A DNA stretch of 63,859 bases from Camelus dromedarius (Eukaryota), in contig NC_087472.1 of NCBI RefSeq assembly GCF_036321535.1, forward strand, positions 2,170,001-2,233,859, given 5' to 3'. The notes beneath the pieces are model-generated. The model did no database searches, had not been told where the DNA came from, and saw only the letters and a list, made by a program, of their open reading frames with translations. The stretch's first letter is position 1, and the number at the start of each line of letters is the position of its first letter. Of this stretch, positions 1,713 through 61,046 are shown one piece after another. Position numbers and translations under genes: made by a program.

Positions 1713-2671
1713 GGCGCTGATGCCCCCTCCCTGGGGGGTGAGAGAGGTGAGGGCCTGGGTGAGGGAGGCCGGCTTCAGGTCTGCACAGGGAAGGAGCCCA
1801 GCGCTGCCAGGAGTCAAGGTAGAACCGTGTGGAGGGACTCGGGTTGCAGGGAATCCAGGTCGGTTCTGCTGTCAGCCCTGGGAGACCGCAGGCAGGGTTG
1901 CGGGGATCAGTGCCCCAACCCCCACCCCCGCTTCCCTCTCGGGGGTCCTGGCTGTGGAGGGGCCTGGGTCCAAGGGGAGCAAACTGAGGTGGGCAGAGGG
2001 AGGGGCCCAGGCCCAGCCTGGAGCCCAGGTGAGGAGCAGAGGGAAGGCTGAGGGACCCCCGGGGAATCCATCTCAGCGCCTGGCGTCCACAGTCCTGGGA
2101 AGCCCTGGGCTTGGTGGCCTGCTGTGAGTCCACAGACGCCCCTGGGGGTCTCTGGGCAGTGAGGGCCTTGGTGTGAAGGTGTGGGCTCGGCTCAACAAGG
2201 GGGCGTCCCAGGACCCGCCGGGGCTCAAGGTGAGGACCCTGACGGAGGACAGCATGGGCCCCACAGATCCCCGCCCCTGCTGTCAGCCCTGGGAGGGCCT
2301 GGGTGGGATGAGCACTCGTGGGGCCCTGACTTCCTCACACCCGGGTCTCCGAGGGACGGGGGTCCTGCGATGAGGGGCGGGGCCTCGGGTGGCCAGAGGC
2401 TAGACGACACGACGCCTAAGTGACGACCCTGAGGGAAAACTGAGGGGACCCCGAACCCGGAAAAGAGGCCATCCCACAGAAAGGGGCCCTTGCTATCAGC
2501 TGTCCGGAGGCCCGAGGGCAGGACAGGCCCCCGTGTTGTGTCGTGACTGCGGCACCCTGGTCTCACAGAGACCGGGGACTTCGTGTGAGATGAGGGGGGG
2601 ACCCTCAGATCTGCAGAGGAGAGAATCCCAGGTCCCACTGGGAGTGAAGGTGACGACCGCGAGCGAGCAGT

Positions 2672-3031
2672 GAGGGACCCTGGACCCCAAAACACAGTCG
2701 GTCCTGGGAGGCCATAGGTCGGAATAAGCACCGGCGGCATTTCCCGCCATCCGGGTCTCGGAGGGACTGGGGTCCTGGGATGAGGGGCGGGGCTTCGGGG
2801 GTTCCAAGGGGAGGCTACATGCCGCCTGAGTCAAAGTGAGGACCCCGAGGGAGAACGGACGGATCTTGCACCCCGGGACAGTGTTGGACCTTGGAGGCCT
2901 TGGGGCAGGGTGACCACCTGCGGCGTTTCCTGCCATCCGGGTCTCGGAGGGACTGGGGTCATGGGATGAGGGGCGGGGCCTCGGGGGCTCCAAGGGGAGG
3001 CTACATGCCGCCTGAGTCAAAGTGAGGACCC
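2672..3031. repeat. 186-bp VNTR, unit 1, 2 copies (types A,C)
   Basis: ctgagtcaaaGTgaggacc with GT at 2836 and 3022. Confidence 0.95.
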
Positions 3032-4033: not shown

Positions 4034-4102
4034 GTTCACAGACGACCGTCCACCAGGAGGAGAGCCCCTGTGAGGCCGAGGGCACCCCTGAAGAGGAGAC
4101 CT
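4034..4102 (+). other. Non-coding penultimate exon (69 nt) of the MAGE-A gene
   Basis: Flanked by acceptor cttcccccgtcAG (4032-4033) and donor GTAAGT (4103). Matches the recalled MAGEA layout (...GAAGATCT|gtaagtag). Other copies: 11311-11379, 18584-18652, 25856-25924, 33132-33200, 40220-40288, 47497-47565, 54773-54841, 62050-62118. Confidence 0.85.
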
Positions 4103-4254: not shown

Positions 4255-5259
4255 ATGCGTGACCTCCACCACACTGAAGCCGACTTTCACGACCCAAGAG
4301 AGGCTGAGGATTCCGAGGATGAGCAGGACATTTGGGTTGAGGAGGAGGAGGGCGCATCCCCGTTGTCTCCCTCCTCCTCCTCCTCCTCCTCCTCCTCCTC
4401 CTTCTCCTCCTCGTCTTCCTACTCAGTCCTGTTCCTGGGCAGTGGCGAGGAGGTGGCTGATTCTGGGACACCCAGTCCCGCGCAGAGCCCTCAGGGTGTC
4501 TGCCCCTCCCCCACAGCCGTGGCAGCCCCTCCCTGGAGCCAGTCGGAAGACAATGGCCTCAGAAGCCAAGGTGAGGAGGGGCCCAGCACCGGGCAGGACC
4601 CGGCAGATGCCGAGTCCCGGCTCCACGATGCATTACATTTGATGATGGTTGACCTGATGGGCTTCCTGCTCCACAAGTACCGCACAAAGCAGCCGACCTC
4701 AAAAGAGGAAATGCTGAATGCGGTCCTCAGAGATGACCGGGACCACTTCCCTGCGGTCTTGAGCCAAGCCTCTGAGTGTCTGCAGCTGGTCTTTGGGGTG
4801 GATGTGAAGGAGGTGGACCCCAGGGAGCACTTGTATGTCCTGGTCCCCACCCTGGGCCTCACCTACGATGGCATGCAGGACGATGGGCAGAGCATTCCCA
4901 AGACTGGCCTCCTGCTGATACTTCTGGGTGTGATTGTCCTGGAGGGCGACTTTGCTCCTGAGGAGGCAGTCTGGGGAGCACTTAGCAAGATGGGGCTGTG
5001 TGCTGGGAGGGAGCACTTCATCTATGGGGAGCCCAGGGAGCTCATCACCAACGTGTGGGTGCGGGAGGGGTACGTGGAGTACCGGCAGGTGGCCAACAGC
5101 GATCCCGCTCGCCACGAGTTCCTGTGGGGTCCCCGGGCCTACACGGAGACCAGCAAGCTGCAAGTCCTGGAACATTTCCTCAGGATCAATAGAAGGGGTC
5201 CCAGTTCTTTCCCGTCCCTGTCTGAAGAGCGAGTGAGTGATGAGGAAGAGGGGGCCTGA
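4255..5259 (+). CDS. MAGEA: MAGE-A family protein (MAGE-A10-like), copy 1, 334 aa, single coding exon
   Basis: MAGE homology domain motifs DLMGFLLHKY, FPAVLSQASECLQLVFGVDVKEVDP, LGLTYDGM, PKTGLL, EHFIYGEPRELIT, VEYRQVANSDPARHEFLWGPRA, plus a Ser-rich/acidic N-terminus. First ATG of the coding exon is at 4255. The ORF-track start at 4114 is an intronic TTG. Exact orthologue not assignable. Confidence 0.95.
   Translation: MRDLHHTEADFHDPREAEDSEDEQDIWVEEEEGASPLSPSSSSSSSSSSFSSSSSYSVLFLGSGEEVADSGTPSPAQSPQGVCPSPTAVAAPPWSQSEDNGLRSQGEEGPSTGQDPADAESRLHDALHLMMVDLMGFLLHKYRTKQPTSKEEMLNAVLRDDRDHFPAVLSQASECLQLVFGVDVKEVDPREHLYVLVPTLGLTYDGMQDDGQSIPKTGLLLILLGVIVLEGDFAPEEAVWGALSKMGLCAGREHFIYGEPRELITNVWVREGYVEYRQVANSDPARHEFLWGPRAYTETSKLQVLEHFLRINRRGPSSFPSLSEERVSDEEEGA
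4372..4401 (+). repeat. Coding (TCC)n microsatellite, poly-Ser
   Basis: Ser codon run before TTC is 10, 8, 8, 10, 9, 9, 10, 10, 6 in copies 1-9. Confidence 0.97.
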
Positions 5260-7433: not shown

Positions 7434-9576
7434 AATAATATTAAATAAGCTTCAGTATCTTAGTTTGTGAATGATATTGATTATACACGTACTGGTACTT
7501 AGGCAGCCCAAGACTGAGTTTTGCTATTTTGTAAAACAAATTGGGAAAGTTTCCATCATACTGTGTCATGCCAAAGTAGGTAACACCGCATCGGAATAGA
7601 AATTTACTTGGAAATGTGAGAGTGATCAGCACTAAAATCGGTGGGGTCAAGAAAGAGAGAAGTAAAAGTAAACGATAGGTAATTATTGGCTCCTTATCCC
7701 TTTTCTTCTGTCAGTCTATAAAATTATAATTATGTGTGTATAACCTGGATTTGTCTGGCTTAGTTAAGAAAGTAGGAGAAAATCAACCTGGATCAGTAGG
7801 ATCCCTGCTCACCATCTCAGTTCATCCGCAGACGTTCACCGAGCCTCTCCTCTCTGGAGGGCTCGGTGTTAGCAGTGGGGACACTCGGAAAAGCAGGACA
7901 GCCCACACCTAGGATAGTCTAGGAGCCGCAGTCACATCGGGAAGTTGGTGAAAGGTCTCCTAAGTCCCATAGGGCAAATAAAAATAGGGCGAGGGGGTGG
8001 GGGTCCGGGAGAGAGCACCCAAGTGTAAGTGCCCAGCGCCAGGGCAGTTCGGGGCTTTGGGAAGCTGGGGGGGAGGTCCTTCTGTGGGAGGTGATGGTAA
8101 TGAAGCTGGGTGGTGGCGGCAGGCAGACGTGCAGACGGCGCTTGTTAGTGGTGAGAGGAACGTGTCAGGTGGGAGATTGCTCTGAGAAGTCCCTCTGGGA
8201 TCGTGGATACATCTCCTGGGCGAGGGGGGAAGGTGTACTTTGTTCAGGGATGCTTAGAGACCTGGTTATCCTGCCTGAGCTGCTAGGACACTCAGAATGC
8301 TCCAACTGCAGGGAGGAGTGGCGTTTGACGTGGCTCACAGTGTACTCCGTCCTGGCATATATAGTTGAAGAGGTTTGGTAACCGCCCCAAACTTGGGGTA
8401 GGATTTACTGGGGTGTGTTCTTGGAAACGGTCTGCTGGACACTTACACTGATGGGTCAGCTCCCCTCGATGGTCAGAATCCAAAGCCATAGATGAGGAAT
8501 GGTCCTGGACATCGCAGGGAGGAAACACCCACCGAGGCTGAATTCCAAACAGGGAATCCACCTCCGGCCCTCCCGACAGCCCTGGGAGACCCCCGGGCAC
8601 GGGGTCCGGATGTGACGGGCGCTGATGCCCCCTCCCTGGGGGGTGAGAGAGGTGAGGGCCTGGGTGAGGGAGGCCGGCTTCAGGTCTGCACAGGGAAGGA
8701 GCCCAGCGCTGCCAGGAGTCAAGGTAGAACCGTGTGGAGGGACTCGGGTTGCAGGGAATCCAGGTCGGTTCTGCTGTCAGCCCTGGGAGACCGCAGGCAG
8801 GGTTGCGGGGATCAGTGCCCCAACCCCCACCCCCGCTTCCCTCTCGGGGGTCCTGGCTGTGGAGGGGCCTGGGTCCAAGGGGAGCAAACTGAGGTGGGCA
8901 GAGGGAGGGGCCCAGGCCCAGCCTGGAGCCCAGGTGAGGAGCAGAGGGAAGGCTGAGGGACCCCCGGGGAATCCATCTCAGCGCCTGGCGTCCACAGTCC
9001 TGGGAAGCCCTGGGCTTGGTGGCCTGCTGTGAGTCCACAGACGCCCCTGGGGGTCTCTGGGCAGTGAGGGCCTTGGTGTGAAGGTGTGGGCTCGGCTCAA
9101 CAAGGGGGCGTCCCAGGACCCGCCGGGGCTCAAGGTGAGGACCCTGACGGAGGACAGCATGGGCCCCACAGATCCCCGCCCCTGCTGTCAGCCCTGGGAG
9201 GGCCTGGGTGGGATGAGCACTCGTGGGGCCCTGACTTCCTCACACCCGGGTCTCCGAGGGACGGGGGTCCTGCGATGAGGGGCGGGGCCTCGGGTGGCCA
9301 GAGGCTAGACGACACGACGCCTAAGTGACGACCCTGAGGGAAAACTGAGGGGACCCCGAACCCGGAAAAGAGGCCATCCCACAGAAAGGGGCCCTTGCTA
9401 TCAGCTGTCCGGAGGCCCGAGGGCAGGACAGGCCCCCGAGTTGTGTCGTGACTGCGGCACCCTGGTCTCACAGAGACCGGGGACTTCGTGTGAGATGAGG
9501 GGGGGACCCTCAGATCTGCAGAGGAGAGAATCCCAGGTCCCACTGGGAGTGAAGGTGACGACCGCGAGCGAGCAGT

Positions 9577-10308
9577 GAGGGACCCTGGACCCCAAAACAC
9601 AGTCGGTCCTGGGAGGCCATAGGTCGGAATAAGCACCGGCGGCGTTTCCCGCCATCCGGGTCTCGGAGGGACTGGGGTCCTGGGATGAGGGGCGGGGCTT
9701 CGGGGGTTCCAAGGGGAGGCTACATGCCGCCTGAGTCAAAGTGAGGACCCCGAGGGAGAACGGAGGGACCCTGGACCCCAAAACACAGTCGGTCCTGGGA
9801 GGCCATAGGTCGGAATAAGCACCGGCGGCATTTCCCGCCATCCGGGTCTCGGAGGGACTGGGGTCCTGGGATGAGGGGCGGGGCTTCGGGGGTTCCAAGG
9901 GGAGGCTACATGCCGCCTGAGTCAAAGTGAGGACCCCGAGGGAGAACGGAGGGATCCTGGACCCCAAGACAGTGTTGGATCTTGGAGGCCTAGGGGCAGG
10001 GTGACCACCTGCGGCGTTTCCTGCCATCCGGGTCTCGGAGGGACTGGGGTCCTGGGATGAGGGGCGGGGCCTCGGGGGCTCCAAGGGGAGGCTATCTGCC
10101 GCCTGAGTCAAAGTGAGGACCCCGAGGGGGAACGGACGGATCTTGCACCCCGGGACAGTGTTGGACCTTGGAGGCCTTGGGGCAGGGTGACCACCTGCGG
10201 CGTTTCCTGCCATCCGGGTCTCGGAGGGACTGGGGTCATGGGATGAGGGGCGGGGCCTCGGGGGCTCCAAGGGGAGGCTACATGCCGCCTGAGTCAAAGT
10301 GAGGACCC
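9577..10308. repeat. 186-bp VNTR, unit 2, 4 copies (A,A,B,C)
   Basis: GT at 9741, 9927, 10113, 10299. Confidence 0.95.
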
Positions 10309-14706: not shown

Positions 14707-16849
14707 AATAATATTAAATAAGCTTCAGTATCTTAGTTTGTGAATGATATTGATTATACACGTACTGGTACTTAGGCAGCCCAAGACTGAGTTTTGCTAT
14801 TTTGTAAAACAAATTGGGAAAGTTTCCATCATACTGTGTCATGCCAAAGTAGGTAACACCGCATCGGAATAGAAATTTACTTGGAAATGTGAGAGTGATC
14901 AGCACTAAAATCGGTGGGGTCAAGAAAGAGAGAAGTAAAAGTAAACGATAGGTAATTATTGGCTCCTTATCCCTTTTCTTCTGTCAGTCTATAAAATTAT
15001 AATTATGTGTGTATAACCTGGATTTGTCTGGCTTAGTTAAGAAAGTAGGAGAAAATCAACCTGGATCAGTAGGATCCCTGCTCACCATCTCAGTTCATCC
15101 GCAGACGTTCACCGAGCCTCTCCTCTCTGGAGGGCTCGGTGTTAGCAGTGGGGACACTCGGAAAAGCAGGACAGCCCACACCTAGGATAGTCTAGGAGCC
15201 GCAGTCACATCGGGAAGTTGGTGAAAGGTCTCCTAAGTCCCATAGGGCAAATAAAAATAGGGCGAGGGGGTGGGGGTCCGGGAGAGAGCACCCAAGTGTA
15301 AGTGCCCAGCGCCAGGGCAGTTCGGGGCTTTGGGAAGCTGGGGGGGAGGTCCTTCTGTGGGAGGTGATGGTAATGAAGCTGGGTGGTGGCGGCAGGCAGA
15401 CGTGCAGACGGCGCTTGTTAGTGGTGAGAGGAACGTGTCAGGTGGGAGATTGCTCTGAGAAGTCCCTCTGGGATCGTGGATACATCTCCTGGGCGAGGGG
15501 GGAAGGTGTACTTTGTTCAGGGATGCTTAGAGACCTGGTTATCCTGCCTGAGCTGCTAGGACACTCAGAATGCTCCAACTGCAGGGAGGAGTGGCGTTTG
15601 ACGTGGCTCACAGTGTACTCCGTCCTGGCATATATAGTTGAAGAGGTTTGGTAACCGCCCCAAACTTGGGGTAGGATTTACTGGGGTGTGTTCTTGGAAA
15701 CGGTCTGCTGGACACTTACACTGATGGGTCAGCTCCCCTCGATGGTCAGAATCCAAAGCCATAGATGAGGAATGGTCCTGGACATCGCAGGGAGGAAACA
15801 CCCACCGAGGCTGAATTCCAAACAGGGAATCCACCTCCGGCCCTCCCGACAGCCCTGGGAGACCCCCGGGCACGGGGTCCGGATGTGACGGGCGCTGATG
15901 CCCCCTCCCTGGGGGGTGAGAGAGGTGAGGGCCTGGGTGAGGGAGGCCGGCTTCAGGTCTGCACAGGGAAGGAGCCCAGCGCTGCCAGGAGTCAAGGTAG
16001 AACCGTGTGGAGGGACTCGGGTTGCAGGGAATCCAGGTCGGTTCTGCTGTCAGCCCTGGGAGACCGCAGGCAGGGTTGCGGGGATCAGTGCCCCAACCCC
16101 CACCCCCGCTTCCCTCTCGGGGGTCCTGGCTGTGGAGGGGCCTGGGTCCAAGGGGAGCAAACTGAGGTGGGCAGAGGGAGGGGCCCAGGCCCAGCCTGGA
16201 GCCCAGGTGAGGAGCAGAGGGAAGGCTGAGGGACCCCCGGGGAATCCATCTCAGCGCCTGGCGTCCACAGTCCTGGGAAGCCCTGGGCTTGGTGGCCTGC
16301 TGTGAGTCCACAGACGCCCCTGGGGGTCTCTGGGCAGTGAGGGCCTTGGTGTGAAGGTGTGGGCTCGGCTCAACAAGGGGGCGTCCCAGGACCCGCCGGG
16401 GCTCAAGGTGAGGACCCTGACGGAGGACAGCATGGGCCCCACAGATCCCCGCCCCTGCTGTCAGCCCTGGGAGGGCCTGGGTGGGATGAGCACTCGTGGG
16501 GCCCTGACTTCCTCACACCCGGGTCTCCGAGGGACGGGGGTCCTGCGATGAGGGGCGGGGCCTCGGGTGGCCAGAGGCTAGACGACACGACGCCTAAGTG
16601 ACGACCCTGAGGGAAAACTGAGGGGACCCCGAACCCGGAAAAGAGGCCATCCCACAGAAAGGGGCCCTTGCTATCAGCTGTCCGGAGGCCCGAGGGCAGG
16701 ACAGGCCCCCGAGTTGTGTCGTGACTGCGGCACCCTGGTCTCACAGAGACCGGGGACTTCGTGTGAGATGAGGGGGGGACCCTCAGATCTGCAGAGGAGA
16801 GAATCCCAGGTCCCACTGGGAGTGAAGGTGACGACCGCGAGCGAGCAGT

Positions 16850-17581
16850 GAGGGACCCTGGACCCCAAAACACAGTCGGTCCTGGGAGGCCATAGGTCGG
16901 AATAAGCACCGGCGGCGTTTCCCGCCATCCGGGTCTCGGAGGGACTGGGGTCCTGGGATGAGGGGCGGGGCTTCGGGGGTTCCAAGGGGAGGCTACATGC
17001 CGCCTGAGTCAAAGTGAGGACCCCGAGGGAGAACGGAGGGACCCTGGACCCCAAAACACAGTCGGTCCTGGGAGGCCATAGGTCGGAATAAGCACCGGCG
17101 GCATTTCCCGCCATCCGGGTCTCGGAGGGACTGGGGTCCTGGGATGAGGGGCGGGGCTTCGGGGGTTCCAAGGGGAGGCTACATGCCGCCTGAGTCAAAG
17201 TGAGGACCCCGAGGGAGAACGGAGGGATCCTGGACCCCAAGACAGTGTTGGATCTTGGAGGCCTTGGGGCAGGGTGACCACCTGCGGCGTTTCCTGCCAT
17301 CCGGGTCTCGGAGGGACTGGGGTCCTGGGATGAGGGGCGGGGCCTCGGGGGCTCCAAGGGGAGGCTATCTGCCGCCTGAGTCAAAGTGAGGACCCCGAGG
17401 GGGAACGGACGGATCTTGCACCCCGGGACAGTGTTGGACCTTGGAGGCCTTGGGGCAGGGTGACCACCTGCGGCGTTTCCTGCCATCCGGGTCTCGGAGG
17501 GACTGGGGTCATGGGATGAGGGGCGGGGCCTCGGGGGCTCCAAGGGGAGGCTACATGCCGCCTGAGTCAAAGTGAGGACCC
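16850..17581. repeat. 186-bp VNTR, unit 3, 4 copies (A,A,B,C)
   Basis: Four copies, same order as unit 2. Confidence 0.95.
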
Positions 17582-21978: not shown

Positions 21979-24121
21979 AATAATATTAAATAAGCTTCAG
22001 TATCTTAGTTTGTGAATGATATTGATTATACACGTACTGGTACTTAGGCAGCCCAAGACTGAGTTTTGCTATTTTGTAAAACAAATTGGGAAAGTTTCCA
22101 TCATACTGTGTCATGCCAAAGTAGGTAACACCGCATCGGAATAGAAATTTACTTGGAAATGTGAGAGTGATCAGCACTAAAATCGGTGGGGTCAAGAAAG
22201 AGAGAAGTAAAAGTAAACGATAGGTAATTATTGGCTCCTTATCCCTTTTCTTCTGTCAGTCTATAAAATTATAATTATGTGTGTATAACCTGGATTTGTC
22301 TGGCTTAGTTAAGAAAGTAGGAGAAAATCAACCTGGATCAGTAGGATCCCTGCTCACCATCTCAGTTCATCCGCAGACGTTCACCGAGCCTCTCCTCTCT
22401 GGAGGGCTCGGTGTTAGCAGTGGGGACACTCGGAAAAGCAGGACAGCCCACACCTAGGATAGTCTAGGAGCCGCAGTCACATCGGGAAGTTGGTGAAAGG
22501 TCTCCTAAGTCCCATAGGGCAAATAAAAATAGGGCGAGGGGGTGGGGGTCCGGGAGAGAGCACCCAAGTGTAAGTGCCCAGCGCCAGGGCAGTTCGGGGC
22601 TTTGGGAAGCTGGGGGGGAGGTCCTTCTGTGGGAGGTGATGGTAATGAAGCTGGGTGGTGGCGGCAGGCAGACGTGCAGACGGCGCTTGTTAGTGGTGAG
22701 AGGAACGTGTCAGGTGGGAGATTGCTCTGAGAAGTCCCTCTGGGATCGTGGATACATCTCCTGGGCGAGGGGGGAAGGTGTACTTTGTTCAGGGATGCTT
22801 AGAGACCTGGTTATCCTGCCTGAGCTGCTAGGACACTCAGAATGCTCCAACTGCAGGGAGGAGTGGCGTTTGACGTGGCTCACAGTGTACTCCGTCCTGG
22901 CATATATAGTTGAAGAGGTTTGGTAACCGCCCCAAACTTGGGGTAGGATTTACTGGGGTGTGTTCTTGGAAACGGTCTGCTGGACACTTACACTGATGGG
23001 TCAGCTCCCCTCGATGGTCAGAATCCAAAGCCATAGATGAGGAATGGTCCTGGACATCGCAGGGAGGAAACACCCACCGAGGCTGAATTCCAAACAGGGA
23101 ATCCACCTCCGGCCCTCCCGACAGCCCTGGGAGACCCCCGGGCACGGGGTCCGGATGTGACGGGCGCTGATGCCCCCTCCCTGGGGGGTGAGAGAGGTGA
23201 GGGCCTGGGTGAGGGAGGCCGGCTTCAGGTCTGCACAGGGAAGGAGCCCAGCGCTGCCAGGAGTCAAGGTAGAACCGTGTGGAGGGACTCGGGTTGCAGG
23301 GAATCCAGGTCGGTTCTGCTGTCAGCCCTGGGAGACCGCAGGCAGGGTTGCGGGGATCAGTGCCCCAACCCCCACCCCCGCTTCCCTCTCGGGGGTCCTG
23401 GCTGTGGAGGGGCCTGGGTCCAAGGGGAGCAAACTGAGGTGGGCAGAGGGAGGGGCCCAGGCCCAGCCTGGAGCCCAGGTGAGGAGCAGAGGGAAGGCTG
23501 AGGGACCCCCGGGGAATCCATCTCAGCGCCTGGCGTCCACAGTCCTGGGAAGCCCTGGGCTTGGTGGCCTGCTGTGAGTCCACAGACGCCCCTGGGGGTC
23601 TCTGGGCAGTGAGGGCCTTGGTGTGAAGGTGTGGGCTCGGCTCAACAAGGGGGCGTCCCAGGACCCGCCGGGGCTCAAGGTGAGGACCCTGACGGAGGAC
23701 AGCATGGGCCCCACAGATCCCCGCCCCTGCTGTCAGCCCTGGGAGGGCCTGGGTGGGATGAGCACTCGTGGGGCCCTGACTTCCTCACACCCGGGTCTCC
23801 GAGGGACGGGGGTCCTGCGATGAGGGGCGGGGCCTCGGGTGGCCAGAGGCTAGACGACACGACGCCTAAGTGACGACCCTGAGGGAAAACTGAGGGGACC
23901 CCGAACCCGGAAAAGAAGCCATCCCACAGAAAGGGGCCCTTGCTATCAGCTGTCCGGAGGCCCGAGGGCAGGACAGGCCCCCGTGTTGTGTCGTGACTGC
24001 GGCACCCTGGTCTCACAGAGACCGGGGACTTCGTGTGAGATGAGGGGGGGACCCTCAGATCTGCAGAGCAGAGAATCCCAGGTCCCACTGGGAGTGAAGG
24101 TGACGACCGCGAGCGAGCAGT

Positions 24122-24853
24122 GAGGGACCCTGGACCCCAAAACACAGTCGGTCCTGGGAGGCCATAGGTCGGAATAAGCACCGGCGGCATTTCCCGCCAT
24201 CCGGGTCTCGGAGGGACTGGGGTCCTGGGATGAGGGGCGGGGCTTCGGGGGTTCCAAGGGGAGGCTACATGCCGCCTGAGTCAAAGTGAGGACCCCGAGG
24301 GAGAACAGAGGGATCCTGGACCCCAAGACAGTGTTGGATCTTGGAGGCCTTGGGGCAGGGTGACCACCTGTGGCGTTTCCTGCCATCCGGGTCTCGGAGG
24401 GACTGGGGTCCTGGGATGAGGGGCGGGGCCTCGGGGGCTCCAAGGGGAGGCTATCTGCCGCCTGAGTCAAAGTGAGGACCCCGAGGGAGAACGGAGGGAT
24501 CCTGGACCCCAAGACACTGTTGGATCTTGGAGGCCTTGGGGCAGGGTGACCACCTGCGGCGTTTCCTGCCATCCGGGTCTCGGAGGGACTGGGGTCCTGG
24601 GATGAGGGGCGGGGCCTCGGGGGCTCCAAGGGGAGGCTATCTGCCGCCTGAGTCAAAGTGAGGACCCCGAGGGGGAACGGACGGATCTTGCACCCCGGGA
24701 CAGTGTTGGACCTTGGAGGCCTTGGGGCAGGGTGACCACCTGCGGCGTTTCCTGCCATCCGGGTCTCGGAGGGACTGGGGTCATGGGATGAGGGGCGGGG
24801 CCTCGGGGGCTCCAAGGGGAGGCTACATGCCGCCTGAGTCAAAGTGAGGACCC
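24122..24853. repeat. 186-bp VNTR, unit 4, 4 copies (A,B,B,C)
   Basis: Four copies; the second copy is B-type. Confidence 0.95.
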
Positions 24854-29254: not shown

Positions 29255-31397
29255 AATAATATTAAATAAGCTTCAGTATCTTAGTTTGTGAATGATATTG
29301 ATTATACACGTACTGGTACTTAGGCAGCCCAAGACTGAGTTTTGCTATTTTGTAAAACAAATTGGGAAAGTTTCCATCATACTGTGTCATGCCAAAGTAG
29401 GTAACACCGCATCGGAATAGAAATTTACTTGGAAATGTGAGAGTGATCAGCACTAAAATCGGTGGGGTCAAGAAAGAGAGAAGTAAAAGTAAACGATAGG
29501 TAATTATTGGCTCCTTATCCCTTTTCTTCTGTCAGTCTATAAAATTATAATTATGTGTGTATAACCTGGATTTGTCTGGCTTAGTTAAGAAAGTAGGAGA
29601 AAATCAACCTGGATCAGTAGGATCCCTGCTCACCATCTCAGTTCATCCGCAGACGTTCACCGAGCCTCTCCTCTCTGGAGGGCTCGGTGTTAGCAGTGGG
29701 GACACTCGGAAAAGCAGGACAGCCCACACCTAGGATAGTCTAGGAGCCGCAGTCACATCGGGAAGTTGGTGAAAGGTCTCCTAAGTCCCATAGGGCAAAT
29801 AAAAATAGGGCGAGGGGGTGGGGGTCCGGGAGAGAGCACCCAAGTGTAAGTGCCCAGCGCCAGGGCAGTTCGGGGCTTTGGGAAGCTGGGGGGGAGGTCC
29901 TTCTGTGGGAGGTGATGGTAATGAAGCTGGGTGGTGGCGGCAGGCAGACGTGCAGACGGCGCTTGTTAGTGGTGAGAGGAACGTGTCAGGTGGGAGATTG
30001 CTCTGAGAAGTCCCTCTGGGATCGTGGATACATCTCCTGGGCGAGGGGGGAAGGTGTACTTTGTTCAGGGATGCTTAGAGACCTGGTTATCCTGCCTGAG
30101 CTGCTAGGACACTCAGAATGCTCCAACTGCAGGGAGGAGTGGCGTTTGACGTGGCTCACAGTGTACTCCGTCCTGGCATATATAGTTGAAGAGGTTTGGT
30201 AACCGCCCCAAACTTGGGGTAGGATTTACTGGGGTGTGTTCTTGGAAACGGTCTGCTGGACACTTACACTGATGGGTCAGCTCCCCTCGATGGTCAGAAT
30301 CCAAAGCCATAGATGAGGAATGGTCCTGGACATCGCAGGGAGGAAACACCCACCGAGGCTGAATTCCAAACAGGGAATCCACCTCCGGCCCTCCCGACAG
30401 CCCTGGGAGACCCCCGGGCACGGGGTCCGGATGTGACGGGCGCTGATGCCCCCTCCCTGGGGGGTGAGAGAGGTGAGGGCCTGGGTGAGGGAGGCCGGCT
30501 TCAGGTCTGCACAGGGAAGGAGCCCAGCGCTGCCAGGAGTCAAGGTAGAACCGTGTGGAGGGACTCGGGTTGCAGGGAATCCAGGTCGGTTCTGCTGTCA
30601 GCCCTGGGAGACCGCAGGCAGGGTTGCGGGGATCAGTGCCCCAACCCCCACCCCCGCTTCCCTCTCGGGGGTCCTGGCTGTGGAGGGGCCTGGGTCCAAG
30701 GGGAGCAAACTGAGGTGGGCAGAGGGAGGGGCCCAGGCCCAGCCTGGAGCCCAGGTGAGGAGCAGAGGGAAGGCTGAGGGACCCCCGGGGAATCCATCTC
30801 AGCGCCTGGCGTCCACAGTCCTGGGAAGCCCTGGGCTTGGTGGCCTGCTGTGAGTCCACAGACGCCCCTGGGGGTCTCTGGGCAGTGAGGGCCTTGGTGT
30901 GAAGGTGTGGGCTCGGCTCAACAAGGGGGCGTCCCAGGACCCGCCGGGGCTCAAGGTGAGGACCCTGACGGAGGACAGCATGGGCCCCACAGATCCCCGC
31001 CCCTGCTGTCAGCCCTGGGAGGGCCTGGGTGGGATGAGCACTCGTGGGGCCCTGACTTCCTCACACCCGGGTCTCCGAGGGACGGGGGTCCTGCGATGAG
31101 GGGCGGGGCCTCGGGTGGCCAGAGGCTAGACGACACGACGCCTAAGTGACGACCCTGAGGGAAAACTGAGGGGACCCCGAACCCGGAAAAGAAGCCATCC
31201 CACAGAAAGGGGCCCTTGCTATCAGCTGTCCGGAGGCCCGAGGGCAGGACAGGCCCCCGTGTTGTGTCGTGACTGCGGCACCCTGGTCTCACAGAGACCG
31301 GGGACTTCGTGTGAGATGAGGGGGGGACCCTCAGATCTGCAGAGCAGAGAATCCCAGGTCCCACTGGGAGTGAAGGTGACGACCGCGAGCGAGCAGT

Positions 31398-32129
31398 GAG
31401 GGACCCTGGACCCCAAAACACAGTCGGTCCTGGGAGGCCATAGGTCGGAATAAGCACCGGCGGCATTTCCCGCCATCCGGGTCTCGGAGGGACTGGGGTC
31501 CTGGGATGAGGGGCGGGGCTTCGGGGGTTCCAAGGGGAGGCTACATGCCGCCTGAGTCAAAGTGAGGACCCCGAGGGAGAACAGAGGGATCCTGGACCCC
31601 AAGACAGTGTTGGATCTTGGAGGCCTTGGGGCAGGGTGACCACCTGTGGCGTTTCCTGCCATCCGGGTCTCGGAGGGACTGGGGTCCTGGGATGAGGGGC
31701 GGGGCCTCGGGGGCTCCAAGGGGAGGCTATCTGCCGCCTGAGTCAAAGTGAGGACCCCGAGGGAGAACGGAGGGATCCTGGACCCCAAGACACTGTTGGA
31801 TCTTGGAGGCCTTGGGGCAGGGTGACCACCTGCGGCGTTTCCTGCCATCCGGGTCTCGGAGGGACTGGGGTCCTGGGATGAGGGGCGGGGCCTCGGGGGC
31901 TCCAAGGGGAGGCTATCTGCCGCCTGAGTCAAAGTGAGGACCCCGAGGGGGAACGGACGGATCTTGCACCCCGGGACAGTGTTGGACCTTGGAGGCCTTG
32001 GGGCAGGGTGACCACCTGCGGCGTTTCCTGCCATCCGGGTCTCGGAGGGACTGGGGTCATGGGATGAGGGGCGGGGCCTCGGGGGCTCCAAGGGGAGGCT
32101 ACATGCCGCCTGAGTCAAAGTGAGGACCC
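31398..32129. repeat. 186-bp VNTR, unit 5, 4 copies (A,B,B,C)
   Basis: Same as unit 4. Confidence 0.95.
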
Positions 32130-36527: not shown

Positions 36528-38670
36528 AATAATATTAAATAAGCTTCAGTATCTTAGTTTGTGAATGATATTGATTATACACGTACTGGTACTTAGGCAG
36601 CCCAAGACTGAGTTTTGCTATTTTGTAAAACAAATTGGGAAAGTTTCCATCATACTGTGTCATGCCAAAGTAGGTAACACCGCATCGGAATAGAAATTTA
36701 CTTGGAAATGTGAGAGTGATCAGCACTAAAATCGGTGGGGTCAAGAAAGAGAGAAGTAAAAGTAAACGATAGGTAATTATTGGCTCCTTATCCCTTTTCT
36801 TCTGTCAGTCTATAAAATTATAATTATGTGTGTATAACCTGGATTTGTCTGGCTTAGTTAAGAAAGTAGGAGAAAATCAACCTGGATCAGTAGGATCCCT
36901 GCTCACCATCTCAGTTCATCCGCAGACGTTCACCGAGCCTCTCCTCTCTGGAGGGCTCGGTGTTAGCAGTGGGGACACTCGGAAAAGCAGGACAGCCCAC
37001 ACCTAGGATAGTCTAGGAGCCGCAGTCACATCGGGAAGTTGGTGAAAGGTCTCCTAAGTCCCATAGGGCAAATAAAAATAGGGCGAGGGGGTGGGGGTCC
37101 GGGAGAGAGCACCCAAGTGTAAGTGCCCAGCGCCAGGGCAGTTCGGGGCTTTGGGAAGCTGGGGGGGAGGTCCTTCTGTGGGAGGTGATGGTAATGAAGC
37201 TGGGTGGTGGCGGCAGGCAGACGTGCAGACGGCGCTTGTTAGTGGTGAGAGGAACGTGTCAGGTGGGAGATTGCTCTGAGAAGTCCCTCTGGGATCGTGG
37301 ATACATCTCCTGGGCGAGGGGGGAAGGTGTACTTTGTTCAGGGATGCTTAGAGACCTGGTTATCCTGCCTGAGCTGCTAGGACACTCAGAATGCTCCAAC
37401 TGCAGGGAGGAGTGGCGTTTGACGTGGCTCACAGTGTACTCCGTCCTGGCATATATAGTTGAAGAGGTTTGGTAACCGCCCCAAACTTGGGGTAGGATTT
37501 ACTGGGGTGTGTTCTTGGAAACGGTCTGCTGGACACTTACACTGATGGGTCAGCTCCCCTCGATGGTCAGAATCCAAAGCCATAGATGAGGAATGGTCCT
37601 GGACATCGCAGGGAGGAAACACCCACCGAGGCTGAATTCCAAACAGGGAATCCACCTCCGGCCCTCCCGACAGCCCTGGGAGACCCCCGGGCACGGGGTC
37701 CGGATGTGACGGGCGCTGATGCCCCCTCCCTGGGGGGTGAGAGAGGTGAGGGCCTGGGTGAGGGAGGCCGGCTTCAGGTCTGCACAGGGAAGGAGCCCAG
37801 CGCTGCCAGGAGTCAAGGTAGAACCGTGTGGAGGGACTCGGGTTGCAGGGAATCCAGGTCGGTTCTGCTGTCAGCCCTGGGAGACCGCAGGCAGGGTGGC
37901 GGAGATCAGTGCCCCAACCCCCACCCCCGCTTCCCTCTCGGGGGTCCTGGCTGTGGAGGGGCCTGGGTCCAAGGGGAGCAAACTGAGGTGGGCAGAGGGA
38001 GGGGCCCAGGCCCAGCCTGGAGCCCAGGTGAGGAGCAGAGGGAAGGCTGAGGGACCCCCGGGGAATCCATCTCAGCGCCTGGCGTCCACAGTCCTGGGAA
38101 GCCCTGGGCTTGGTGGCCTGCTGTGAGTCCACAGACGCCCCTGGGGGTCTCTGGGCAGTGAGGGCCTTGGTGTGAAGGTGTGGGCTCGGCTCAACAAGGG
38201 GGCGTCCCAGGACCCGCCGGGGCTCAAGGTGAGGACCCTGACGGAGGACAGCATGGGCCCCACAGATCCCCGCCCCTGCTGTCAGCCCTGGGAGGGCCTG
38301 GGTGGGATGAGCACTCGTGGGGCCCTGACTTCCTCACACCCGGGTCTCCGAGGGACGGGGGTCCTGCGATGAGGGGCGGGGCCTCGGGTGGCCAGAGGCT
38401 AGACGACACGACGCCTAAGTGACGACCCTGAGGGAAAACTGAGGGGACCCCGAACCCGGAAAAGAGGCCATCCCACAGAAAGGGGCCCTTGCTATCAGCT
38501 GTCCGGAGGCCCGAGGGCAGGACAGGCCCCCGTGTTGTGTCGTGACTGCGGCACCCTGGTCTCACAGAGACCGGGGACTTCGTGTGAGATGAGGGGGGGA
38601 CCCTCAGATCTGCAGAGGAGAGAATCCCAGGTCCCACTGGGAGTGAAGGTGACGACCGCGAGCGAGCAGT

Positions 38671-39216
38671 GAGGGACCCTGGACCCCAAAACACAGTCGG
38701 TCCTGGGAGGCCATAGGTCGGAATAAGCACCGGCGGCATTTCCCGCCATCCGGGTCTCGGAGGGACTGGGGTCCTAGGATGAGGGGCGGGGCTTCGGGGG
38801 TTCCAAGGGGAGGCTACATGCCGCCTGAGTCAAAGTGAGGACCCCGAGGGAGAACGGAGGGATCCTGGACCCCAAGACAGTGTTGGACCTTGGAGGCCTA
38901 GGGGCAGGGTGACCACCAGTGGCATTTCCCGACATCCGGGTCTCGGAGGGACTGGGGTCCTGGGATGAGGGGCGGGGATTGGGGTGGCCAGAGGGGAGAC
39001 CACATGCTGCCTGAGTCAAGGTGAGGACCCCGAGGGAGAACGGAGGGATCCTGGACCCCAAGACAGTGTTGGACCTTGGAGGCCTTGGGGCAGGGTGACC
39101 ACCTGTGGCGTTTCCTGCCATCCGGGTCTCGGAGGGACTGGGGTCCTTGGATGAGGGGCGGGGCCTCGGGGGCTCCAAGGGGAGGCTACATGCCGCCTGA
39201 GTCAAAGTGAGGACCC
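38671..39216. repeat. 186-bp VNTR, unit 6, 3 copies (A,D,B/C)
   Basis: Three copies; divergent D copy ending ctgagtcaagGTgagg (GT at 39021). Confidence 0.95.
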
Positions 39217-43619: not shown

Positions 43620-45762
43620 AATAATATTAAATAAGCTTCAGTATCTTAGTTTGTGAATGATATTGATTATACACGTACTGGTACTTAGGCAGCCCAAGAC
43701 TGAGTTTTGCTATTTTGTAAAACAAATTGGGAAAGTTTCCATCATACTGTGTCATGCCAAAGTAGGTAACACCGCATCGGAATAGAAATTTACTTGGAAA
43801 TGTGAGAGTGATCAGCACTAAAATCGGTGGGGTCAAGAAAGAGAGAAGTAAAAGTAAACGATAGGTAATTATTGGCTCCTTATCCCTTTTCTTCTGTCAG
43901 TCTATAAAATTATAATTATGTGTGTATAACCTGGATTTGTCTGGCTTAGTTAAGAAAGTAGGAGAAAATCAACCTGGATCAGTAGGATCCCTGCTCACCA
44001 TCTCAGTTCATCCGCAGACGTTCACCGAGCCTCTCCTCTCTGGAGGGCTCGGTGTTAGCAGTGGGGACACTCGGAAAAGCAGGACAGCCCACACCTAGGA
44101 TAGTCTAGGAGCCGCAGTCACATCGGGAAGTTGGTGAAAGGTCTCCTAAGTCCCATAGGGCAAATAAAAATAGGGCGAGGGGGTGGGGGTCCGGGAGAGA
44201 GCACCCAAGTGTAAGTGCCCAGCGCCAGGGCAGTTCGGGGCTTTGGGAAGCTGGGGGGGAGGTCCTTCTGTGGGAGGTGATGGTAATGAAGCTGGGTGGT
44301 GGCGGCAGGCAGACGTGCAGACGGCGCTTGTTAGTGGTGAGAGGAACGTGTCAGGTGGGAGATTGCTCTGAGAAGTCCCTCTGGGATCGTGGATACATCT
44401 CCTGGGCGAGGGGGGAAGGTGTACTTTGTTCAGGGATGCTTAGAGACCTGGTTATCCTGCCTGAGCTGCTAGGACACTCAGAATGCTCCAACTGCAGGGA
44501 GGAGTGGCGTTTGACGTGGCTCACAGTGTACTCCGTCCTGGCATATATAGTTGAAGAGGTTTGGTAACCGCCCCAAACTTGGGGTAGGATTTACTGGGGT
44601 GTGTTCTTGGAAACGGTCTGCTGGACACTTACACTGATGGGTCAGCTCCCCTCGATGGTCAGAATCCAAAGCCATAGATGAGGAATGGTCCTGGACATCG
44701 CAGGGAGGAAACACCCACCGAGGCTGAATTCCAAACAGGGAATCCACCTCCGGCCCTCCCGACAGCCCTGGGAGACCCCCGGGCACGGGGTCCGGATGTG
44801 ACGGGCGCTGATGCCCCCTCCCTGGGGGGTGAGAGAGGTGAGGGCCTGGGTGAGGGAGGCCGGCTTCAGGTCTGCACAGGGAAGGAGCCCAGCGCTGCCA
44901 GGAGTCAAGGTAGAACCGTGTGGAGGGACTCGGGTTGCAGGGAATCCAGGTCGGTTCTGCTGTCAGCCCTGGGAGACCGCAGGCAGGGTGGCGGAGATCA
45001 GTGCCCCAACCCCCACCCCCGCTTCCCTCTCGGGGGTCCTGGCTGTGGAGGGGCCTGGGTCCAAGGGGAGCAAACTGAGGTGGGCAGAGGGAGGGGCCCA
45101 GGCCCAGCCTGGAGCCCAGGTGAGGAGCAGAGGGAAGGCTGAGGGACCCCCGGGGAATCCATCTCAGCGCCTGGCGTCCACAGTCCTGGGAAGCCCTGGG
45201 CTTGGTGGCCTGCTGTGAGTCCACAGACGCCCCTGGGGGTCTCTGGGCAGTGAGGGCCTTGGTGTGAAGGTGTGGGCTCGGCTCAACAAGGGGGCGTCCC
45301 AGGACCCGCCGGGGCTCAAGGTGAGGACCCTGACGGAGGACAGCATGGGCCCCACAGATCCCCGCCCCTGCTGTCAGCCCTGGGAGGGCCTGGGTGGGAT
45401 GAGCACTCGTGGGGCCCTGACTTCCTCACACCCGGGTCTCCGAGGGACGGGGGTCCTGCGATGAGGGGCGGGGCCTCGGGTGGCCAGAGGCTAGACGACA
45501 CGACGCCTAAGTGACGACCCTGAGGGAAAACTGAGGGGACCCCGAACCCGGAAAAGAAGCCATCCCACAGAAAGGGGCCCTTGCTATCAGCTGTCCGGAG
45601 GCCCGAGGGCAGGACAGGCCCCCGTGTTGTGTCGTGACTGCGGCACCCTGGTCTCACAGAGACCGGGGACTTCGTGTGAGATGAGGGGGGGACCCTCAGA
45701 TCTGCAGAGCAGAGAATCCCAGGTCCCACTGGGAGTGAAGGTGACGACCGCGAGCGAGCAGT

Positions 45763-46494
45763 GAGGGACCCTGGACCCCAAAACACAGTCGGTCCTGGGA
45801 GGCCATAGGTCGGAATAAGCACCGGCGGCATTTCCCGCCATCCGGGTCTCGGAGGGACTGGGGTCCTGGGATGAGGGGCGGGGCTTCGGGGGTTCCAAGG
45901 GGAGGCTACATGCCGCCTGAGTCAAAGTGAGGACCCCGAGGGAGAACAGAGGGATCCTGGACCCCAAGACAGTGTTGGATCTTGGAGGCCTTGGGGCAGG
46001 GTGACCACCTGTGGCGTTTCCTGCCATCCGGGTCTCGGAGGGACTGGGGTCCTGGGATGAGGGGCGGGGCCTCGGGGGCTCCAAGGGGAGGCTATCTGCC
46101 GCCTGAGTCAAAGTGAGGACCCCGAGGGAGAACGGAGGGATCCTGGACCCCAAGACACTGTTGGATCTTGGAGGCCTTGGGGCAGGGTGACCACCTGCGG
46201 CGTTTCCTGCCATCCGGGTCTCGGAGGGACTGGGGTCCTGGGATGAGGGGCGGGGCCTCGGGGGCTCCAAGGGGAGGCTATCTGCCGCCTGAGTCAAAGT
46301 GAGGACCCCGAGGGGGAACGGACGGATCTTGCACCCCGGGACAGTGTTGGACCTTGGAGGCCTTGGGGCAGGGTGACCACCTGCGGCGTTTCCTGCCATC
46401 CGGGTCTCGGAGGGACTGGGGTCATGGGATGAGGGGCGGGGCCTCGGGGGCTCCAAGGGGAGGCTACATGCCGCCTGAGTCAAAGTGAGGACCC
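45763..46494. repeat. 186-bp VNTR, unit 7, 4 copies (A,B,B,C)
   Basis: Same as units 4 and 5. Confidence 0.95.
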
Positions 46495-47717
46495 TCAAGC
46501 AGGAAGGAGGGGCCCCTGAACCCAGAAAAGTGGCCATCCCACAGAGAGTCGCCCTTGCTTTCAGCTGTCCGGCGGCCCGAGGGGACGACAGCCCACGTGG
46601 TTTGTCCTGACTTCCGCATCCGAGTCTCAGACAGACCTGGGACATAGTGAAAGGGCGGGGGCCTCAGGTCTGCGGAGGAGAGAATCTCAGGGCCGCCTGG
46701 GAGTGAAGGTGACGACCGCGAGTTAGCATTCAGGGACCCTGGACCCCAAAACAGAGTCAGTCCTGGGAGGCCATGGGGCGGGAGGACCTCGGGCAGCAGT
46801 TCCTGAAATGCGGGTCTCAGAGGGACTGGGGTCTTGGTATGACGGGCGGGGCCTCAGGTGGGCTGAGAGGGGAATCCCAGGTCCTGCCAGGAGTCAAGGT
46901 GACCCCGAGGGAGGAGTGAGGGACCCGAGATCCCAGAACAGAGGGGACGCAACCGATCCTGCCCCTGCTGTCAGCCCTGGGAGGCCTCAATGCGGGATGA
47001 GCACACGTGGTGTGTCCTGACTTCGGCATCCAGGGCTCAGAGAGACCGGGGACCTACTATCAGGATGGGGCCCTCAGGTGGTTGCAGAGCAGAATCCCAG
47101 GTCCCGCTTGGAGTCCCGGTGAGGACCCTGAGTTAGCGCGGACAGGACCTCCCACCCTAGAAGAGTGGGAACCTGCCAGAGCCCAGGCCTCCTGCCAGCA
47201 CGCGGGTCCAGGGCTGTGCCACAGTGTAGATCCGAGGTCTCCCCTCCTTTCTCTCCCAGGGGCTCCAGACACCGGGAAGGCCTAGGTCTGAGACACGTGT
47301 TCTCGGGTCACAGAGCACAGGAGGCTGGCAGTGCCAGGACTGAAGGTGAGGTGTGGGCCCTGAGTGTGTACCCGGGGGCTCCCGGAACAGAGGGGACCCC
47401 GCGAGGCCAACGTCCACTCCACACACCCCGTGTTGCCCCCAGAACCTCGGGCTGTGCCGGCTGCACCCTGAGGAGCCGCCTCACTTCCCCCGTCAGGTTC
47501 ACAGACGACCGTCCACCAGGAGGAGAGCCCCTGTGAGGCCGAGGGCACCCCTGAAGAGGAGACCTGTAAGTAGCCTTTGTCAGAGCCCCCCACGGTGGGT
47601 TTCTCAGCCCGGGCCACTGACACTCCCTTTCTTCCCCAGGCCCGTGGGTCCCCATCTGTCACCCCTGCCCTCGCTGCTCTCAGCTGCCCGACACCACTCA
47701 CCGTGCCTCCCGTTCAG

Positions 47718-48722
47718 ATGCGTGACCTCCACCACACTGAAGCCGACTTTCACGACCCAAGAGAGGCTGAGGATTCCGAGGATGAGCAGGACATTTGGGT
47801 TGAGGAGGAGGAGGGCGCATCCCCGTTGTCTCCCTCCTCCTCCTCCTCCTCCTCCTCCTCCTCCTTCTCCTCCTCGTCTTCCTACTCAGTCCTGTTCCTG
47901 GGCAGTGGCGAGGAGGTGGCTGATTCTGGGACACCCAGTCCCGCGCAGAGCCCTCAGGGTGTCTGCCCCTCCCCCACAGCCGTGGCAGCCCCTCCCTGGA
48001 GCCAGTCGGAAGACAATGGCCTCAGAAGCCAAGGTGAGGAGGGGCCCAGCACCGGGCAGGACCCGGCAGATGCCGAGTCCCGGCTCCACGATGCATTACA
48101 TTTGATGATGGTTGACCTGATGGGCTTCCTGCTCCACAAGTACCGCACAAAGCAGCCGACCTCAAAAGAGGAAATGCTGAATGCGGTCCTCAGAGATGAC
48201 CAGGACCACTTCCCTGCGGTCTTGAGCCAAGCCTCTGAGTGTCTGCAGCTGGTCTTTGGGGTGGATGTGAAGGAGGTGGACCCCAGGGAGCACTTGTATG
48301 TCCTGGTCCCCACCCTGGGCCTCACCTACGATGGCATGCAGGACGATGGGCAGAGCATTCCCAAGACTGGCCTCCTGCTGATACTTCTGGGTGTGATTGT
48401 CCTGGAGGGCGACTTTGCTCCTGAGGAGGCAGTCTGGGGAGCACTTAGCAAGATGGGGCTGTGTGCTGGGAGGGAGCACTTCATCTATGGGGAGCCCAGG
48501 GAGCTCATCACCAACGTGTGGGTGCGGGAGGGGTACGTGGAGTACCGGCAGGTGGCCAACAGCGATCCCGCTCGCCACGAGTTCCTGTGGGGTCCCCGGG
48601 CCTACACGGAGACCAGCAAGCTGCAAGTCCTGGAACATTTCCTCAGGATCAATAGAAGGGGTCCCAGTTCTTTCCCGTCCCTGTCTGAAGAGCGAGTGAG
48701 TGATGAGGAAGAGGGGGCCTGA
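47718..48722 (+). CDS. MAGEA: MAGE-A family protein, copy 7, 334 aa (10-Ser tract, DDQDH)
   Basis: Intact frame. Confidence 0.95.
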   Translation: MRDLHHTEADFHDPREAEDSEDEQDIWVEEEEGASPLSPSSSSSSSSSSFSSSSSYSVLFLGSGEEVADSGTPSPAQSPQGVCPSPTAVAAPPWSQSEDNGLRSQGEEGPSTGQDPADAESRLHDALHLMMVDLMGFLLHKYRTKQPTSKEEMLNAVLRDDQDHFPAVLSQASECLQLVFGVDVKEVDPREHLYVLVPTLGLTYDGMQDDGQSIPKTGLLLILLGVIVLEGDFAPEEAVWGALSKMGLCAGREHFIYGEPRELITNVWVREGYVEYRQVANSDPARHEFLWGPRAYTETSKLQVLEHFLRINRRGPSSFPSLSEERVSDEEEGA

Positions 48723-53038: not shown

Positions 53039-53770
53039 GAGGGACCCTGGACCCCAAAACACAGTCGGTCCTGGGAGGCCATAGGTCGGAATAAGCACCG
53101 GCGGCATTTCCCGCCATCCGGGTCTCGGAGGGACTGGGGTCCTGGGATGAGGGGCGGGGCTTCGGGGGTTCCAAGGGGAGGCTACATGCCGCCTGAGTCA
53201 AAGTGAGGACCCCGAGGGAGAACAGAGGGATCCTGGACCCCAAGACAGTGTTGGATCTTGGAGGCCTTGGGGCAGGGTGACCACCTGCGGCGTTTCCTGC
53301 CATCCGGGTCTCGGAGGGACTGGGGTCCTGGGATGAGGGGCGGGGCCTCGGGGGCTCCAAGGGGAGGCTATCTGCCGCCTGAGTCAAAGTGAGGACCCCG
53401 AGGGAGAACGGAGGGATCCTGGACCCCAAGACACTGTTGGATCTTGGAGGCCTTGGGGCAGGGTGACCACCTGCGGCGTTTCCTGCCATCCGGGTCTCGG
53501 AGGGACTGGGGTCCTGGGATGAGGGGCGGGGCCTCGGGGGCTCCAAGGGGAGGCTATCTGCCGCCTGAGTCAAAGTGAGGACCCCGAGGGGGAACGGACG
53601 GATCTTGCACCCCGGGACAGTGTTGGACCTTGGAGGCCTTGGGGCAGGGTGACCACCTGCGGCGTTTCCTGCCATCCGGGTCTCGGAGGGACTGGGGTCA
53701 TGGGATGAGGGGCGGGGCCTCGGGGGCTCCAAGGGGAGGCTACATGCCGCCTGAGTCAAAGTGAGGACCC
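53039..53770. repeat. 186-bp VNTR, unit 8, 4 copies (A,B,B,C)
   Basis: As unit 7, but cacctgcgg rather than cacctgtgg in copy 2. Confidence 0.95.
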
Positions 53771-60314: not shown

Positions 60315-61046
60315 GAGGGACCCTGGACCCCAAAACACAGTCGGTCCTGGGAGGCCATAGGTCGGAATAATCACTGGCGGCATTTCCCGCCATCCGGGTC
60401 TCGGAGGGACTGGGGTCCTGGGATGAGGGGCGGGGCTTCGGGGGTTCCAAGGGGAGGCTACATGCCGCCTGAGTCAAAGTGAGGACCCCGAGGGAGAACG
60501 GAGGGATCCTGGACCCCAAGACAGTGTTGGACCTTGGAGGCCTAGGGGCAGGGTGACCACCGGTGCCATTTCCCGACATCCGGGTCTCGGAGGGACTGGG
60601 GTCCTGGGTTGAGGGGCGGGGCTTCGGGGGTTCCAAGGGGAGGCTACATGCCGCCTGAGTCAAAGTGAGGACCCCGAGGGAGAACGGAGGGATCCTGGAC
60701 CCCAAAACAGTGTTGGACCTTGGAGGCCTAGGGGCAGGGTGACCACCAGTGGCATTTCCCGACATCCGGGTCTCGGAGGGACTGGGGTCCTGGGTTGAGG
60801 GGCGGGGATTGGGGTGGCCAGAGGGGAGACCACATGCTGCCTGAGTCAAGGTGAGGACCCCGAGGGGGAACGGACGGATCTTGCACCCCGGGACAGTGTT
60901 GGACCTTGGAGGCCTTGGGGCAGGGTGACCACCTGTGGCGTTTCCTGCCATCCGGGTCTCGGAGGGACTGGGGTCCTGGGATGAGGGGCGGGGCCTCGGG
61001 GGCTCCAAGGGGAGGCTACATGCCGCCTGAGTCAAAGTGAGGACCC
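60315..61046. repeat. 186-bp VNTR, unit 9, 4 copies (A',B',D,C)
   Basis: Contains the D copy (GT at 60851) shared with unit 6. Confidence 0.95.

Follow-up and report, generated by a model that had tools for sequence, protein, structure and literature searches.

Nine head-to-tail MAGE-A8-like gene units fill the analysed window of Camelus dromedarius DNA (the whole stretch under study, 63,859 nucleotides). The region upstream of each gene is marked by a head-to-tail 186-bp repeat, a minisatellite of the VNTR type, whose copy number varies among the nine paralogous units and between camelid species assemblies. The repeat is the youngest segment within an old series of MAGE modules that resemble promoter/first-exon units. 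The best explanation of the data, which we favour with some reserve, is that of a minisatellite made of a MAGE-A 5' building block, whose copies may serve as alternative starts silenced by methylation.

The outer unit measures ~7.27 kb, with a period of 7272–7277 bp between units of equal repeat copy number, and unit-to-unit identity exceeds 99.5%. The flanks of the units (5.3 kb) differ by 1–27 bases, and sort the units into the clusters {1,2,3}, {4,5,7,8} and {6,9}. An intact ORF of 330–334 codons is found in 9/9 units. Pfam domains MAGE (6e-15) and MAGE_N (2.4e-13) both reside in one coding exon, and by domain content the gene is assigned to the type I MAGEs (MAGE-A). The top database matches of the ORF are proteins called 'melanoma-associated antigen 8-like' in Camelus bactrianus (99%) and Vicugna pacos (88%). 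Each gene is followed at the 3' side by an L1-derived spacer, which includes the two masked N runs of the unit. Given what is known of MAGE-A genes, we take the array to reside on the X chromosome. An Rfam search of the window gave no match, and a literature search brought up no work on camel MAGE arrays.

A (CCT)n microsatellite of 14–18 repeats, encoding poly-serine, is located inside the ORF of every unit (4370-4424, 11647-11695, 18920-18968 etc.), and the protein variants of 330–334 aa among the nine units are due to differences in its length. The alpaca orthologue (P0002) features instead a long Glu/Asp run just before the poly-serine position.

Altogether, 33 copies of the repeat were identified, each of exactly 186 bp. 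The sequence-only reading had proposed 2, 4, 4, 4, 4, 3, 4, 4 and 4 copies in units 1 to 9, and these figures proved exact, both by exact-motif counts and by in-register extraction. The arrays are distributed as follows:

2642..3013, + strand: unit 1 array, 2 copies (A-type and D-type), from motif counts and extraction
9547..10290, + strand: unit 2 array, 4 copies, from TRF and extraction
16820..17563, + strand: unit 3 array, 4 copies, from TRF and extraction
24092..24835, + strand: unit 4 array, 4 copies, from TRF and extraction
31368..32111, + strand: unit 5 array, 4 copies, from TRF and extraction
38641..39198, + strand: unit 6 array, 3 copies (A-X-D), the common Bactrian arrangement, from TRF and extraction
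45733..46476, + strand: unit 7 array, 4 copies, A at 45733, B at 45919, C at 46105, D at 46291; the reference unit
53009..53752, + strand: unit 8 array, 4 copies, from TRF and extraction
60285..61028, + strand: unit 9 array, 4 copies (A, ?, X, D), from TRF and extraction

TRF lists eight arrays (units 2–9), and misses that of unit 1 because the two copies of the latter are only 82% identical. The interval 2672–3031, from which the analysis started, corresponds to this same two-copy array, in a phase slightly shifted relative to 2642–3013. Repeats of 186 bp at 80–100% identity are far beyond chance.

Copies can be sorted into types. Type A, the first copy of each array, is 98–100% identical across units, yet shares just 80–85% identity with the majority of other copies, owing to a 5' half that resembles the module called m10 below. 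Type D, the last copy, and the inner B and C copies are mostly 94–99% alike; type X, found in units 6 and 9, is more distant (86–93%). Units 6 and 9 also carry private variants.

The motif CATCCGGG, of Ets type, and the GC box GAGGGGCGGGG were found ~25 bp apart in 33/33 copies. In the layout of a copy, TTTCC(C/T)GCC stands beside the Ets-type CATCCGG, which has a CpG in its core, the Sp1 GC box follows ~25 bp on, and a donor-like AAA|GTGAGG is located ~45 bp after the GC box. The 3' motif reads GAGTCAAA|GTGAGG in 31/33 copies and GAGTCAAG|GTGAGG in 2/33. The donor-like sites of all 33 copies match MAG|GTRAGT at 7/9 or 8/9 positions, and feature A at position -1 in 31. Copies in unit 7 hold 7–14 CpGs each, have a G+C content of 66–68% and a CpG observed/expected ratio of 0.37–0.72, which is intermediate, and not that of a strong CpG island. 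The Ets-like motif, GC box and donor-like AA(A/G)|GTGAGG that had been ascribed to each copy are found in 33/33, and the several CpGs in every copy of unit 7.

The 186-bp copies are not isolated, but are part of a longer series. About 12 modules of ~190–220 bp fill the 2.4 kb upstream of exon 2, which is conserved and is followed by coding exon 3, so that several homologous promoter/exon-1-like units, 12 per gene, lie before one shared exon 2. In unit 7 the run is organized as follows:

44890..47353, + strand: run of 12 head-to-tail homologous modules, from nhmmer with the 186-bp profile, alignment and motif table
44890, 45101, 45311 and 45508, + strand: starts of m1, m2, m3 and m4, on the 5' side
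45733-46476, + strand: modules A–D, the 186-bp repeat, corresponding to modules 5–8
46477, 46699, 46889 and 47109, + strand: starts of m9, m10, m11 and m12, on the 3' side
47346, + strand: first intron base at the m12 donor CTGAAG|GTGAGG, where the run ends

Flanking modules were matched by the 186-bp profile in nhmmer searches at 4e-37 (m10), 2e-23 (m3), 2e-19 (m11), 2e-11 (m4) and 1e-10 (m9), and more weakly in m12, m2 and m1. According to the motif table, A–D are the only modules of the unit in which Ets core, GC box and donor are kept together. The donor of the older modules reads AAG|GTGAGG, versus the A found at -1 in 31/33 copies. Module m9 carries ACTTCCGC (46600-46620 in unit 7, and likewise in other units), in which CTTCCG is closer to the Ets consensus than anything in the repeat copies; with a GC box and a pair of donor-like sites besides, m9 is a candidate for a real promoter.

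Upstream of the first recognizable module lies a G+C-rich stretch (7900-8350 in unit 2, 44090-44540 in unit 7, the same place elsewhere), which shows the strongest G-over-C skew of the unit (0.36). Next to it, in unit 7, a single weak module-like match was found (44737-44884).

Downstream of the run, the following predicted exons were delimited:

47497..47565, + strand: exon 2 of unit 7, non-coding, 69 nt, ..cag|GTTCAC...GAGACCT|gtaagt
4034-4102 and 11311-11379, + strand: exon 2 of units 1 and 2, as examples of the other units
47640..48722, + strand: exon 3 of unit 7 to the stop codon, with acceptor ccccag|GCCCGTGGG, a 78 nt leader, ATG at 47718 and the 334-codon MAGE ORF
4255..5259, + strand: MAGE-A8-like ORF of unit 1, 334 aa, downstream of the two-copy array

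Splice sites that fit the consensus bound exon 2 and mark the acceptor of exon 3 at the same position in 9/9 units, as judged from sequence, and reading frames were worked out exon by exon. The coding-exon acceptors CAG|ATG and CTCTCAG|CTG were abandoned once the canonical boundaries of exons 2 and 3 had been found. The NCBI model P0007, from the Bactrian locus L002, delimits exon 2 in precisely this way, and two others, P0005 and P0085, which are extended at the N-terminus, read through the acceptor of exon 3.

The annotated models examined start in m10 or use the m12 donor, and none uses the repeat. The m12 donor, of the same module-boundary type as the donor-like sites of the copies, is used in the camelid models P0004 and P0005. 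P0007 uses a CAG|GT donor within m10; the same place in the repeat copies reads CTCGGGGG, and the donor is lost. The coding sequence of P0007 starts inside m10 (L002:2278-3070, Bactrian camel). Another model, P0095, runs from m10 across the modules as far as an adjacent MAGE-A10-like gene; at this edge of the array, it probably represents a chimeric or read-through prediction. No transcript contigs were found for the camel protein cluster, all members of which derive from genome records, and the sole short contig of the dog relative (L020) is colinear genomic DNA and no transcript. RNA-labelled runs from a 'reproductive system' study hold 52–55% of the sampled words of 44800–49300, more than the ~35% of this interval made up by the ORF and downstream sequence; the share denotes presence only, and unspliced RNA or carry-over of DNA would explain it just as well.

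Copy number has changed recently. Unit 1 (2 copies) and units 2 and 3 (4 copies) have flanks only 2–3 bases apart in 5.3 kb, and unit 6 (3 copies) groups by its flanks with unit 9 (4 copies). The two differences, 2 versus 4 and 3 versus 4, therefore point to two or more recent events within the window. In the Bactrian camel (L001–L009), 3 copies were found in 13 sampled units, and 1 copy in two terminal units. The A-X-D array of dromedary unit 6 and the Bactrian A-X-D array are identical, copy by copy, at 185, 183 and 180 of 186 positions. The single Bactrian copy has an A-like 5' part and a D-like 3' end, a hybrid make-up that is the footprint of unequal exchange. In the alpaca (L010, L011) there are 2+2 copies. 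Orthologues of A and D are found at 95% and 92% identity, hence the repeat predates the camel-alpaca split. The second alpaca pair is inserted between m3 and m4, and has m3/D hybrid ends (e.g. L011:7583-8378); it arose independently, so two places in the module run have expanded in two lineages. Copy-number states thus range from 1 to 4 across Camelus, and are 2+2 in alpaca. Most units of one genome share one state because the outer array homogenizes.

The Bactrian array (GCA_048773025.1, CM109942.1, 116.22-116.36 Mb) spans at least 140 kb and includes ~20 units with a period of 7080–7117 bp. Its two terminal units are shorter and have one repeat copy each; units at the edge apparently evade homogenization. 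An older dromedary assembly (L021, GCA_000803125.3) has four noisy copies between m4 and m9. This assembly apparently includes one or two array units only, in which repeat copies are full of small indels, and the array has probably been collapsed.

The repeat had been described from the sequence as a live, still-mutating version of fossil modules. This view is borne out: recent copy-number change, between near-identical units and between camelid species, combined with homology to five degenerate flanking modules (1e-10 to 4e-37), marks the repeat as an ongoing case of the process by which the older modules arose. Modules of this type are not restricted to camelids. Searches across orders with the 186-bp profile, and with a broader profile made from the 12 camel modules, detected homologous module runs within 6 kb upstream of MAGE-A-like genes in black rhinoceros (L012), dog (L013 and L014) and a beaked whale (L016). 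The recurrent core is made by TTCC..CATCCGGGTCTCAGAG, followed by the GGGCGGGG box and by CTCAGGT, with GAGTCAAG|GTGAGGACC at the module boundary. The presence of modules in rhinoceros, dog and whale indicates that the fossil modules are a general architecture of MAGE-A 5' regions.

The function that the copies might have is suggested by human MAGE-A1. According to two papers that deal with its promoter (PMC4230356, PMC6126015, citing De Smet 1995 and 1999), Ets factors account for most of the activity, an Sp1 site overlaps the two Ets sites, and the gene is silenced by CpG methylation of these sites. The camel stretch GTTTCCCGCCATC resembles the forward primer published for the -77/+183 fragment of this promoter (PMC4230356); the human sequence compared is this one 19-nt primer, read by eye. 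At the level of motifs, the set of a MAGE-A1-type promoter, an Ets motif with CpG plus an Sp1 GC box, is found in 33/33 copies. Each copy had been called a complete promoter/first-exon cassette. The MAGE-A1 motif set, and a donor-like site before a canonical exon 2, agree with this description by resemblance; against the word 'complete' speak the weak donor of 31/33 copies, the loss of the CAG|GT donor, an upstream ATG in 31/33 copies and a motif half that is not significantly more conserved than the rest. The ATG (GGGATGAGGGG, in the GC-box region) lies 56 nt before the donor in 31/33 copies (e.g. 45871-45926), and is replaced by TTG in two copies of unit 9; in a transcript with such a copy as first exon, an upstream ORF of ~32 codons would start there and stop in exon 2. 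The donor GT is lost in one Bactrian and one alpaca copy type. A test for constraint covered 30 different copies of three species. When each copy type is taken by itself, variability in the Ets-to-GC-box segment is not significantly lower than elsewhere in the copy (p 0.2–0.8). A p of 0.016, obtained with A-type and non-A copies mixed, was rejected as evidence of selection, as it is due to the chimeric origin of type A. CpG transitions account for 9/77 variable columns, and CpG decay is not informative.

These data leave room for different views of the repeat. Copies may be descended from promoter/exon-1 modules, and now be part of an inert minisatellite in the 5' flank or intron 1, which drifts in copy number, the gene being driven elsewhere, for example by one of the modules m9–m12 near exon 2, or by m1–m3 upstream. 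The weakened donor, the loss of CAG|GT, the broken donors of some copies and the upstream ATG fit this account, as do the gene models, which use m10 or m12, the better Ets consensus of m9 (CTTCCG) and the lack of excess conservation in the motif segment. Yet gene models, being predictions, need not correspond to RNA; constraint is expected to be weak anyway in redundant alternative first exons; and the copies are the very modules which combine Ets core, GC box and donor. We regard inertness as possible, but rather unlikely. That at least some copies can start transcripts is plausible by homology, and to us slightly the better guess.

Two further readings concern copy number itself. Cassette number had been viewed as a selected dosage dial, which would tune the number of start sites, the CpG load and the methylation sensitivity, and hence the output of each gene copy. 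Copy number does vary between species and units, and the motifs are those of a methylation-controlled promoter, but most units share one state (4 copies in dromedary, 3 in Bactrian camel), as array homogenization alone predicts, and copies show no sign of constraint. A copy number shared within a genome fits concerted evolution as well as selection; the dial is speculative and hardly probable, and differences in copy number are expected to be largely neutral. The boldest form of the idea, in which the copies would be active methylation-gated alternative promoters, whose number (1–4) sets MAGE output in a two-level system (gene units by cassettes) evolving fast under male-germline selection or X-linked conflict, strikes us as improbable. 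The 2- and 3-copy arrays could instead be collapsed versions of a uniform 4-copy repeat, in a macrosatellite that is hard to assemble. Units more than 99.5% identical are prone to such a reading, and the older dromedary assembly is visibly noisy at the repeat. Against it, the A-X-D array of unit 6 matches the common Bactrian arrangement copy by copy (180–185 of 186), units 6 and 9 have private variants, differences in copy number go along with distinct variants in sequence, and states of 1, 3 and 2+2 copies are seen in independent assemblies. An artefact of this sort is very unlikely.

The favoured reading, that of a minisatellite of potential alternative starts, may be outlined as follows. 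The young, near-identical copies A, B, C and D arose, and come and go, through slippage or unequal crossing-over of adjacent modules, as shown by the recombinant copies (the Bactrian A/D hybrid and the alpaca m3/D hybrids). Homogenization of the outer array then spreads one copy-number state over most units of a genome. We infer that each copy retains the motif set of a MAGE-A promoter/exon-1 unit, and because of this set each would most likely be a potential alternative start silenced by DNA methylation. From the short first exon of a copy, splicing would proceed to the conserved 69-nt exon 2 and on to coding exon 3, after the pattern of human MAGE-A4, which has a series of duplicated first exons.

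MAGE-A genes are textbook examples of switching by promoter methylation. To our knowledge, the reason why their 5' regions consist of repeated promoter/first-exon modules has never been explained. The phenomenon described here is of a known kind, the duplication of promoter/first-exon modules of MAGE-A genes, caught young and variable: in the camel array modules are identical, gains and losses can be dated, and three species can be compared. The array therefore makes up a natural allelic series (1, 2, 3 and 4 cassettes in near-identical units) for the analysis of start sites and methylation sensitivity. If the cassettes are silent, what is left is merely a minisatellite within an ampliconic gene array.

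The closest known system is human MAGE-A4 (MAGE4a), in which De Plaen et al. in 1997 are said to have described a set of eight alternative first exons, homologous to one another and each under a promoter of its own. Both systems feature homologous units of promoter and first exon, which arise by local duplication upstream of a common exon. The camel differs in that its youngest units are 94–99% alike, lie exactly 186 bp apart and hold first exons that are putative only, and in that the number of units differs among paralogous gene copies as well as among species. With the human MAGE-A1 promoter the camel unit shares CATCCGG with a CpG core, an adjacent TTCC motif, a GC box, the absence of a TATA box and an intermediate CpG density. 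The MAGE-A1 promoter has an inverted pair, versus the one CATCCGG of the camel unit. The distance from the putative promoter to the donor is shorter in the camel unit.

Outside the family, the Drosophila hydra gene, expressed in testis, has nine tandem alternative first exons, at least four of which have been shown to start transcripts (PMC1904467). Common to both are a young gene of the male germline and the repeated tandem duplication of its exon 1, with a structure that differs between sibling species. Hydra is an unrelated gene, however, its exons are flanked by transposons, and the camel first exons are putative. Promoter-region tandem repeats which vary in copy number, and may alter transcription, include MAOA-uVNTR and INS-VNTR. 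Their units are factor-binding sequences of 14–30 bp that vary between alleles, whereas the camel units are whole promoter/exon-like modules that vary between paralogues of an array. X-linked ampliconic arrays of cancer/testis genes of the same kind as the camel outer array are known in CT47 and GAGE. The ampliconic genes of the primate X (PMC13616518) likewise consist of head-to-tail units more than 99% identical, with intact genes of testis type that undergo concerted evolution. The likeness concerns the 7.27-kb outer array, and the finding reported here is the repeat nested inside it.
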